Assembly (NCBI RefSeq): GCF_964204645.1
Contig: NC_134036.1
Location: forward strand, 1,612,001-1,676,000
Reading direction: 5' to 3'
Source: Tubulanus polymorphus
Taxonomy: Eukaryota; Animalia; Nemertea
DNA length: 64,000 bases
Position 1 is the first letter of the stretch, and each line of letters begins with the position of its first letter. The notes under the pieces were generated by a model. It ran no database searches and was not told the DNA's origin. It worked only from the letters and a program-made list of their open reading frames with translations. Positions 30,001 through 33,000 of this stretch are shown here, piece by piece. The position numbers were made by a program, and so were the translations under genes.

Positions 30001-33000
30001 TTTACTTGAACGTTCATTGGCAAAACCGAACCGCATCAGCAGCAGCAAAAAGAAGCTGAACATGGAAGTATTATAGGTGACGAGAAACCTCACCTTGAAC
30101 TGGCAGAAAATTATAACAATTGACAAGAGAAGCCTCTTTTACACCTGTACAGAGTGACTTTCCTACTGGCAGCATACTGATCAAGAACAAAAAGTTGTCA
30201 AGTGAAACTGGGAAAGGTTATCAGAGCAGAGGAACTATCAGAGCATAATCATCTTGAAGAGGACTTTCATATTTGAAACACACCTCCTGCAATTGTAAGT
30301 AAGAAACCGATAGGCCTTCTGTGATCTCCTTTAAATGTAACATAGATATTCACTTTTCTTCTCAATAATGATTTAACAGCTAATGGTCGCGTGCGTGTAT
30401 ATCCCACGACGGAGGATGATAATCCTGATCAGTACCATCCTTATTGTCAATGCGATGATTTGGTACGCGTTCTGGTGGCGAGGGTACGAGACTGTCTCGA
30501 TGATAAGTCGTCGCAGCAATGGTAGTTCAGAGGTCGTTAGGAAAATGTCGCTGTCATTTGTCGGAGATATAATGGTTCACGACGCCATTTTGAAATCTGC
30601 TTACGACAAAAACACGTCTAAATACGACTTCAATCCGATCTTTAGGTATTGCATTTTTCCTCTTGACAATTCTCGATCGAAGCTGATCAGGAATGGGCTT
30701 AAGTTGATCGTACGATCGACTTTGGGGAGAGATTGGATTAGGTCAAATAATTGTTTCAACACCCAAGGGTATGGTTAGTTGCTTATCCAATGGGTTTTGG
30801 CGTGGTCAATACCAAGGTTTAAAAACGGTCTTAAATAATATTTGGTATAAAACTTGCCAATAGAACCGCGATGGACAATAGACTACCATTTACTCTCTGA
30901 ACCTTTATTCATTTCCCATATATACTTTCAGACACGTTAAGCGCCACCTGTCGGCCACGGACTTCACTATCGGTAATCTAGAGGTAGTCGTCGGTGTTGA
31001 ACCGTACGGACAAGTTAAATCTAATTATCACGCTCATCCGCTGTTTTCAGCGCCACCTGAACTCGTTGAAGCATTACGTAACGCCGGATTCGACGTCTTA
31101 GTAACTGCCAACAATCACGCTACCGACCTCGGCGACGAAGGCATCGTTAAAACGCTACAAACGTTAGACGCTTACGGTCTACGTCACACGGGCACGTTTG
31201 CCAACGCGCCGGATCCAAACTCGCCGTTGATTATAGAAAAAGGTGGCATGCGCGTCGCCATCTTGTCTTACACGAAACGATCCCCGCTTAGTACAGAACA
31301 TGTATCGCCCCCTATCGTCGTGAACTATCTCGATAAAGAGAGGATACGCGACGACGTGCGTGGCGTGAGGGACTCCGGGGTCGACGCGATCGTGGCCGTC
31401 GTTCACTGGGGCAAGGAATACCAGGAACATCCCGATAAACTACATCAGCAATACTGGTTAGACTATCTAAACGAATTAGGGGTGAAGGTCGTTATCGGGT
31501 CGCATCCTCACGTGTTGCAGCCGATGATCTGGAACAGGGCAGACGACTCTTTAGTCGTTTATTCGCTCGGTAACTTCCTGGCGAAGATGCACCACGGCAT
31601 CGTCATGCTCAAAGGCGCCGCCATTGTTCGCGTCGACCACGAGCTGCGAAAAGGTGGCGCCACTACTGTTGTAAATGTCAATACGACCGATTTAGTTTTC
31701 GAAAGTCGAATTTCGATAACGAATGTCGATTATCGATTGACGTATGTCGATTCGACTAGTGATGGTAAATTTTCGGTGATTCCCGTTCGGGAATTCGCGC
31801 CGCGAAAACTCGAAAACAGCGGCAACAACGAAACCATGACGAATTTACAGACGTTCGTTAAACAAGCAACTGAACTTCTAGACAACGAGAATGTGAATGT
31901 ACCAGAAATTGTGTAGAGAATTTGAACCGTAGTTTGCTCAAAATATGGTTTAAGGGGCCGGTTCCAGTTTCTAATGTCATGGCTTAGACTAATTCTACAT
32001 TCCTGAGGATATGGTTAAAGTAAACCATCTGGGGCCCGGTTCTAATGTCATGGCTTAGACTTAAGAATAGTCTAAGACCATCTTAGTTATAAAGCTATTC
32101 TAACAGCTTATGACAAACCCTGTGATTAAGACTACTTTTTAAGAACCGGGTTTGAGCGGCTGTTGCACATTCAAACCACAACATTCCTGAAGAAGATGGC
32201 TATTAGGTTATAGTCGAAATGACGAATCAATGAATAATTGGCACAAAATGACATTCTATTATCTGTTACACGTTTTAGGTTAATCTGACTTGGAGATCAA
32301 GACCTTTAGGCCGTGTCTATGGTTTAGGCGTATCTACGTAGTTCACAAGCTGGCAAGAAATGTCGCCGGCCAAATACCTTATACAGCCATTACCACCATT
32401 CAATTATGAATGAAGTTGCAATGATTTATTTATTTAGTTACCCTCCTGGTAAGGAGGGCTTCAAAAATAGTCTATAGACTCATTGATTGTTCCTCTCCAC
32501 GGAAATCTTTAGTAAAAGGCGAAAGATTTAAACGCGGTTGAAGAGAAACCAGAGTGATTCAGCTGACAGTCCTCGAGGTATTTATACCCCGGATCCATTG
32601 CCTTTATAAACGGTGTTTTACTTTCGAATAATATGAATATTTTCTACCACCAAATTGTCGTCAAAGTCAGAAGTTTCCACAGAGTTCAGTTGGAATTTTA
32701 CTCAGATTTAAATCCAATTTATTTAGTTTAAAACCCAATTTATTCAAAGTTTAAAATATCTAAAGTTAATTTTATTTCATCAAAATGAAAATCAAAAAGC
32801 GCGACATTTCAGGTGTGACGACTGATGACGATCTGCTGTGAGAGTTCGAAACGCCGTGCTTTGAATAAATAAAATTCGTTTGTTTTTTAATCTTTTAAAC
32901 TTTCTTGGTAGGTTTAAAGTGTTTGATATTATATTCTTCAAGTCTTAGAGTACTGTAACTAATTTAGTAGTCACGCTGAGAAGCCGATCCCATACTGGAA

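Follow-up and report, generated by a model that had tools for sequence, protein, structure and literature searches.

A Flavobacteriia-type CapA gene, probably transferred and domesticated, in the ribbon worm Tubulanus polymorphus

The palaeonemertean Tubulanus polymorphus carries a family of CapA-type genes that very probably derives from a stand-alone CapA-family gene of a marine Flavobacteriia-like bacterium and was later domesticated, as judged by sequence comparison. The member studied here lies on the plus strand at positions 30383–31916 of the window, the 64,000-nucleotide stretch of DNA that was analyzed (C12:1612001-1676000), and is located at 1.64 Mb of a chromosome-scale contig. Its two exons encode a product of 415 amino acids, which contains a predicted N-terminal membrane anchor and a complete PGA_cap (CapA/PgsA) domain.

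Gene model and chromosomal setting

The two exons of the CapA-type gene are joined through a split arginine codon (Table 1). The 3′ end of exon 1 encodes the residues NPIF, followed by the bases AG, and the next bases, on the donor side, are GTAT. Exon 2 completes the arginine codon (AG|A) and continues for 327 codons to the stop. In a BLASTP comparison, the last 34 residues of exon 1 align to residues 24–57 of P0121, the protein of an intronless paralogue described below, and exon 1 also aligns to residues 24–56 of the Cyclobacteriaceae protein P0014. On P0121, exon 1 ends at residue 57 and exon 2 begins at residue 59. The junction is therefore exact, without gain or loss of a residue, because the split arginine codon supplies the single residue between them. 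The GT-AG intron is positioned at a point of continuity in the bacterial protein. Overall, the sequence comparison gives good support to an intron of the spliceosomal type that was gained in the animal. The preliminary description of this locus had proposed an open reading frame of ~415 residues with an N-terminal transmembrane anchor and a GT-AG intron at these positions. The coordinates, frames, length and anchor were all reproduced, and the intron was borne out at the sequence level by its canonical sites and its exact junction relative to P0121. The CapA motifs listed in that description (GDIMVH, GNLE, ANNHATD, HTG, HWGKEY, GSHPHV and YSLGNF) are likewise present. Bacterial homologues and P0121 have N-terminal signal peptides at the position of the predicted anchor. 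A further stretch directly upstream of the start codon reads as a possible 5′-UTR intron.

Table 1. Positions of the CapA-type gene and of neighboring features in the window
Feature	Position	Strand	Description
Candidate 5′-UTR intron	30297–30380	+	GTAAGT ... TTTAACAG, immediately 5′ of the ATG; possible, from sequence reading only
Exon 1	30383–30645	+	ATG, signal-anchor and GDIMVH metal-site motif; 87 codons and 2 bases (AG of an Arg codon)
Signal-anchor, predicted type II	30416–30478 (residues 12–32)	+	Hydrophobic, preceded by RRR; Kyte-Doolittle 19-residue maximum 2.20
Intron	30646–30931	+	GT..AG, phase 2, 286 nt; GC 0.38 (exons 0.46–0.50); stops in the exon-1 frame
Exon 2	30932–31916	+	Remainder of PGA_cap and bacterial-type C-terminal domain; stop at 31914–31916
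Host-gene intron 1	28944–44365	-	15.4 kb; contains the CapA-type gene (antisense) and two U5 genes; from splice consensus and frame continuity
U5 snRNA gene	32440–32557	-	Rfam RF00020, 96 bits; 0.5 kb downstream of the CapA-type stop codon
Second U5 snRNA gene	33517–33635	-	Rfam RF00020, 92 bits; 1.6 kb downstream

The surrounding host gene is encoded on the minus strand and begins with an ATG at position 44582. Its donor (G|GTAAGT, 44366/44365) and acceptor (TTGTAG|CC, 28944/28943) conform to the splice consensus, and the reading frame resumes across them, which places the CapA-type gene in antisense orientation within the host intron. A downstream exon of the host gene has a weak match to the Pfam EF-hand_5 profile (E 0.037), and the N terminus of the host protein bears a motif that we take to be calexcitin/SCP-like. 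These two observations weakly suggest a calexcitin/SCP-like EF-hand gene. Of the earlier proposal that the CapA-type gene is nested in an animal EF-hand gene, the antisense intronic location thus stands on the splice sites and frame, and the EF-hand identity on the weak match and the N-terminal motif. The neighboring U5 genes named in the same proposal were recovered as two Rfam matches. Exons of a CPEB gene (RRM_7 and CEBP_ZZ) are found at 52552–54788 of the window. Moreover, a local BLAST search, run with window positions 32486–32534 masked, identified a host repeat at 5253–5574 and 15739–16028 of the window and inside the introns of two paralogues (L003 and L005). The CapA-type gene sits among host genes on a worm chromosome, and its integration, as first proposed, is evident from the enclosing host intron, the U5 and CPEB genes and the contig C12.

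A six-copy family and its bacterial relatives

A profile search of all contigs of the T. polymorphus genome (268 Mb, 77 contigs) located six PGA_cap loci. Five of them, the window copy and four copies on contig C10 (L003–L006), contain a phase-2 GT..AG intron of roughly 150 to 660 nt in one shared arginine codon that follows a conserved phenylalanine. Since the site and phase are identical in the window copy and the four paralogues, the intron is older than the duplications that gave rise to the intron-bearing copies. The sixth copy (L001, contig C1) is intronless, and its single frame of 361 codons encodes a signal peptide that appears cleavable. The open reading frames of paralogues are identical to the NCBI T. 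polymorphus proteins P0121, P0001, P0002 and P0011, which are labelled "CapA-like". No protein identical to window exon 2 was found in a collection of 15 billion proteins, and the window copy, in contrast to these four annotated paralogues, therefore seems to be unannotated. The gene of the preliminary description is real but does not stand alone; it belongs to a set of six paralogues, and its intron recurs in four of the others.

Bacterial contamination or a chimeric assembly would account for a protein of bacterial type and for an exon whose GC and CpG contents are somewhat above those of its surroundings. This explanation is scarcely credible and was rejected. An intron at a conserved site is found in five loci on two chromosomes, host repeats reside in the introns of paralogues, and U5 and CPEB genes lie near the window copy on a chromosome-scale contig. 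In addition, the best identity to a bacterial protein is low, at only 40% for the window copy and 52% for the intronless copy. Across bacterial homologues, the identity of the window copy is 36–43%.

The phylogeny of the family was analyzed with its bacterial homologues in IQ-TREE using 44 rows and the LG+C20+F+G4 model by PMSF (supports are ultrafast bootstrap/SH-aLRT). The six worm copies form one clade (98/98). Within it, the intronless copy branches first (83/60), and the window copy groups with the triplet of C10 copies as its sister (100/98). The worm clade in turn belongs to a 22-row clade (100/99) whose other members include a Tenacibaculum MAG and proteins from marine metagenomes, all within Flavobacteriia-type Bacteroidota. 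A quick tree of 103 rows agrees with this topology of the worm clade. The closest bacterial relatives are encoded on dense, true Bacteroidota contigs that also bear FtsX, LptF/G and T9SS-tail genes. Among 185,579 species genomes, the best 80 loci are all from Bacteroidota except for a small number of bins with odd labels. When 1.84 billion cluster representatives were searched exhaustively with HMMER, the only clusters to score above 180 bits were two of worm paralogues and one of bacterial proteins, and no protein from any other animal was closer than these; the next ten matches were looked up, and the three that carry names are all Bacteroidota CapA or metagenome CapA/YwtB proteins. The bacterial relatives were also compared for a conserved gene neighborhood, and none was found that would give a functional lead. 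The window gene thus falls within the diversity of Bacteroidota, and the Bacteroidota origin suggested in the preliminary description, which had called for such a phylogeny, gains support from the nested position of the worm clade and from the contigs of its closest relatives.

Descent of the family from an ancient CapA gene that cnidarians and other phyla inherited vertically is highly improbable. PGA_cap genes are known from cnidarians and cyst nematodes, and the tree is built without cnidarian sequences. The worm family is nevertheless nested in one Flavobacteriia-type clade, and three protein searches returned no animal protein from outside the worm among their best 120 or 150 matches. Vertical inheritance was rejected on these two grounds.

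The number of transfers is less firmly constrained by the tree. All worm branches are long (0.7–1.2), and the union of the worm copies could therefore partly reflect long-branch attraction. By the AU test, a topology that places the intronless copy among bacteria, away from the remaining worm copies, is not rejected (p 0.30). The identity of this copy reaches 52% with bacterial proteins but only ~40–46% with the other worm copies. Two transfers from similar Flavobacteriia donors, one yielding the intronless copy on chromosome 1 and the other the five intron-bearing copies, would fit these values. We regard this alternative as unlikely because the best tree unites all six copies, and a single transfer, with the intron acquired once the first duplication had occurred, is simpler.

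The favored history is thus a single transfer from a marine Flavobacteriia-like Bacteroidota donor into the worm lineage. The presence of one intronless copy and of five copies that share a gained intron allows transfer, duplication and intron gain to be ordered. In the simplest history, the transfer would have been followed by a duplication, by intron gain in one of the daughters and by more duplications. With its specific chemistry left aside, we consider the explanation as a whole to be probable.

PGA_cap domain, predicted fold and constraint

The exons were analyzed separately, and exon 2 is the basis of the phylogeny, the structural model and the dN/dS estimates. Exon 2 matches the Pfam PGA_cap profile (PF09587) with an E value of 1.8e-57 and 195 bits (cut-off 27) over profile positions 31–254 of 255. 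The first 30 profile positions are supplied by exon 1, as observed in the alignment to homologues; exon 1, which by itself is too short to score, has no match in Pfam or NCBIfam. In an alignment of 69 sequences, window exon 2 retains every one of the 31 invariant columns. The metal-binding and catalytic residues of the PGA_cap family are kept, with GDxxxH (as GDIMVH) in exon 1, together with NLE, NNHxxD, HWG and HPH.

The AlphaFold2 model of exon 2 (pLDDT 87, pTM 0.90) adopts a calcineurin-like fold. A Foldseek search with this model ranked MslH first (E 4e-12, TM 0.60), followed by 5′-nucleotidases and SoxB. MslH, an epimerase of the C-terminal tryptophan of a lasso peptide (PDB 8GQ9/8ITG), is also the sole solved relative by sequence (E 5e-12, 18% identity) and hence the nearest solved structure to the worm protein by both sequence and fold. 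The catalytic residues of MslH have been reported (PMC10406935). MslH has two His/Asp dyads and Ca-binding residues. The alignment shows conserved counterparts of its Glu44, Asn87, His88, Asp91 and His295, and that of D11 is conserved by motif; the mapping did not extend to H259 and H261. The worm protein differs from MslH in that it is membrane-anchored and has no lasso-peptide partner, and it scores 54 bits against the NCBIfam MslH equivalog model (NF038314; cut-off 700). A feature search of the ESM Atlas retrieved generic PGA_cap clusters only.

The worm protein is collinear over its full length with CapA proteins of marine Bacteroidota, from the signal or anchor segment to the C-terminal ...ENxNVxE motif, and shares the invariant residues with them. 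In contrast to the bacterial proteins, which have a cleavable signal peptide, the worm protein has a predicted type II anchor and contains two small insertions of 3 and about 16 residues. The worm gene also differs in its intron and in its higher GC content (0.47 versus 0.26–0.38 for donor-type loci). The hydrophobic segment follows an RRR motif and coincides with the bacterial signal peptides, which predicts a luminal or extracellular orientation of the catalytic domain. The predicted anchor and the full set of invariant residues support the membrane-anchored enzyme that had been envisaged for this locus, and the metal site is intact.

Comparison of the window copy with each paralogue gave a dN of about 0.5, with dS saturated or not computable, and a ratio of at most about 0.2. 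The young C10 triplet exhibits dN/dS values of 0.39–0.47. Because the frame and the family-invariant residues are intact despite the saturation of dS, the window gene appears to be under long-term constraint. Together with the shift in GC content away from that of the donors, these features argue for a domesticated gene, as originally suggested. Alternatively, the window copy could be a silent or decaying relic in the intron of another gene, and only some of its paralogues would be functional. Its product is missing from the protein collection, where four paralogues are present, and a 2015 run from the same species, presumed to be RNA, contains almost none of the words of the stretch and none of those of this copy; the runs that contain the words of the stretch come from one study, which leaves the kind of library unstated. 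A relic would however have had to preserve a 415-codon frame beyond the saturation of synonymous sites, the complete set of invariant catalytic residues, canonical splice sites with an exact junction and a sequence with a confidently predicted fold, and we give this alternative little weight.

Putative chemistry and relation to other animal PGA_cap genes

The product of the window gene is predicted to be a type II membrane protein of the secretory pathway whose catalytic domain is luminal or extracellular. As a metalloenzyme, it would use acid-base chemistry to epimerize or hydrolyze a substrate of peptide-like or gamma-glutamyl nature; its site of action may be secreted material or polymers of bacterial envelopes. 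Epimerase chemistry like that of MslH is a tentative assignment that we hold to be possible but improbable.

Profiles of PgsC/CapC (PF14102) and PgsB/CapB (TIGR04012) gave no match in the 268-Mb worm genome, and the control was positive in Bacillus subtilis for each profile. The earlier statement that the window contains no capB or capC partner was thus correct and extends to the whole genome. PgsB and PgsC above the cut-off are also absent from five donor-type Bacteroidota genomes. In B. subtilis, PgsA is not the polymerase. PgsB and PgsC alone polymerize glutamate, and when PgsA is missing the polymer continues to be produced by PgsBC, now L-rich, as the D/L ratio shifts from 75/25 to 5/95 (PMC6029982). 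The worm protein resembles the PgsA/CapA of the Bacillus PgsBCA system in its Pfam family and its anchored N terminus, but it lacks PgsB and PgsC partners, and the worm genes belong to a Bacteroidota-type subfamily. Since the ligase PgsB and PgsC are missing, the worm product is not a polyglutamate polymerase, and since the five donor-type genomes also lack them, the gene that was transferred did not belong to a polyglutamate synthase. From these sequence comparisons, it is very unlikely that the window copy makes polyglutamate by itself, and the name "PGA biosynthesis protein" is misleading for the worm family. The reading of the gene as a polyglutamate enzyme in the preliminary description is not sustained.

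The family could still serve poly-gamma-glutamate chemistry if a host ligase replaced PgsB and PgsC, with the polyanion destined, for instance, for the nematocyst-like pseudocnidae or for mucus. The family name points in this direction, as does the cnidarian PgsAA, a bacterial PGA_cap gene acquired by horizontal transfer that has been linked to the poly-gamma-glutamate of nematocysts (PMC5375639). Tubulanus species carry eversible pseudocnidae (PMC7897414), and the worm product is predicted for the secretory pathway and is represented by six copies. The absence of PgsB and PgsC from both recipient and donor-type genomes and the dispensability of PgsA for polymerization stand against this possibility, which we judge to be remote.

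The cnidarian and worm genes are alike in that each is a PGA_cap gene of bacterial origin acquired by an animal with eversible extrusomes. They differ in that no cnidarian protein is among the best matches of the worm proteins, and the worm clade lies within Bacteroidota, nested in a Flavobacteriia-type clade. A transfer separate from the cnidarian one is therefore likely, on the indirect evidence of the search rankings and of the tree with bacterial homologues. In cyst nematodes, the candidate PolS (PF09587) is listed as horizontally acquired, with its function given as "not known" (PMC4901422); it is also an animal PGA_cap gene of listed horizontal origin, in a phylum different from that of the worm. 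No description of nemertean PGA_cap genes was found in the literature searched. With T. polymorphus, nemerteans become a third phylum for the transfer of a bacterial PGA_cap gene, after cnidarians and cyst nematodes.

The anatomy of this transfer is unusually clear, with a donor clade that can be named and an expansion to six genes. It also carries the caution that the label "CapA" should not be read as "polyglutamate synthase", and the cnidarian case may merit the same scrutiny, given that the recipient and five donor-type genomes here are without the polymerase. Expression in the gland cells that produce pseudocnidae or mucus, if it occurs, would make the family a testable handle on the secretions of ribbon worms. 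At its most speculative, and as a long shot, nemerteans may have recruited the gene independently of cnidarians for the same purpose, with six anchored copies in the gland cells that build the nematocyst-like pseudocnidae (or in those of toxic mucus), where they would make or epimerize a gamma-glutamyl polyanion or peptides with D-residues. If this convergence were true, extrusome chemistry would have had a transfer-driven origin in two phyla.

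Flanks and composition of the window's CapA-type gene

Immediately 5' of the ATG of the CapA-type gene, window positions 30297-30380 contain a consensus donor (GTAAGT) and an acceptor (TTTAACAG). The two splice signals may delimit an intron in the 5' UTR of this gene. Directly past the stop codon, a motif of ~30 nt (GGTTC.AGTTTCTAATGTCATGGCTTAGAC) occurs in two near-identical copies at window positions 31950-32060, and the pair may mark where a small mobile element terminates on either side. The CpG observed/expected ratio is 1.73 in exon 2 (window 30933-31913) versus 1.01 across the whole window.

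Neighbouring genes and repeats

The window also contains a tRNA gene, exons of a CPEB-type gene, a host tandem repeat and a purine-rich simple repeat. Window positions 32486-32534, within the first U5 snRNA gene, were excluded from all subsequent searches. The first piece of the CPEB-type gene matches RRM_7 and RRM_1, and the second piece matches RRM_1 weakly. A repeat resembling the purine-rich simple repeat is observed at window positions 6200-7000. Copies of the host tandem repeat are ~80-87% identical. The same tandem repeat takes up the introns of the CapA-type paralogues at loci L003 and L005, which lie on a chromosome other than that of the window.

Features in the window and at paralogous CapA-type loci
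Feature	Location	Strand	Details
tRNA gene	window 355-427	+	Rfam, 69 bits
Host tandem repeat	window 5253-5574 and 15739-16028; L003:981-1349; L005:1088-1414		
CPEB-type gene exons	window 52552-54788	+	RRM_7, RRM_1 and CPEB ZZ domain matches
Purine-rich simple repeat	window 60000-62100		~2 kb; GC skew 0.91, AT skew 0.72-0.74
CapA-type paralogue, NCBI model P0011	L006:1201-2991 (G000:C10, ~10.05 Mb)		

CapA-type paralogues on contig C10

Four of the six CapA-type paralogues are located on one chromosome, where they are spread over 0.58 Mb (G000, C10:10049976-10628748). Two of these loci, L006 and L003, lie on opposite strands with a spacing of only ~5 kb. In P0011, the NCBI protein model at L006, the PGA_cap domain is fused to a CAP/CRISP-type domain (PF00188). 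Unlike this model, the genomic frame of L006 continues to a normal bacterial-type C-terminus (...NLNIGEVHL). The mismatch between model and frame is due either to alternative splicing or to the merging of genes in the model.
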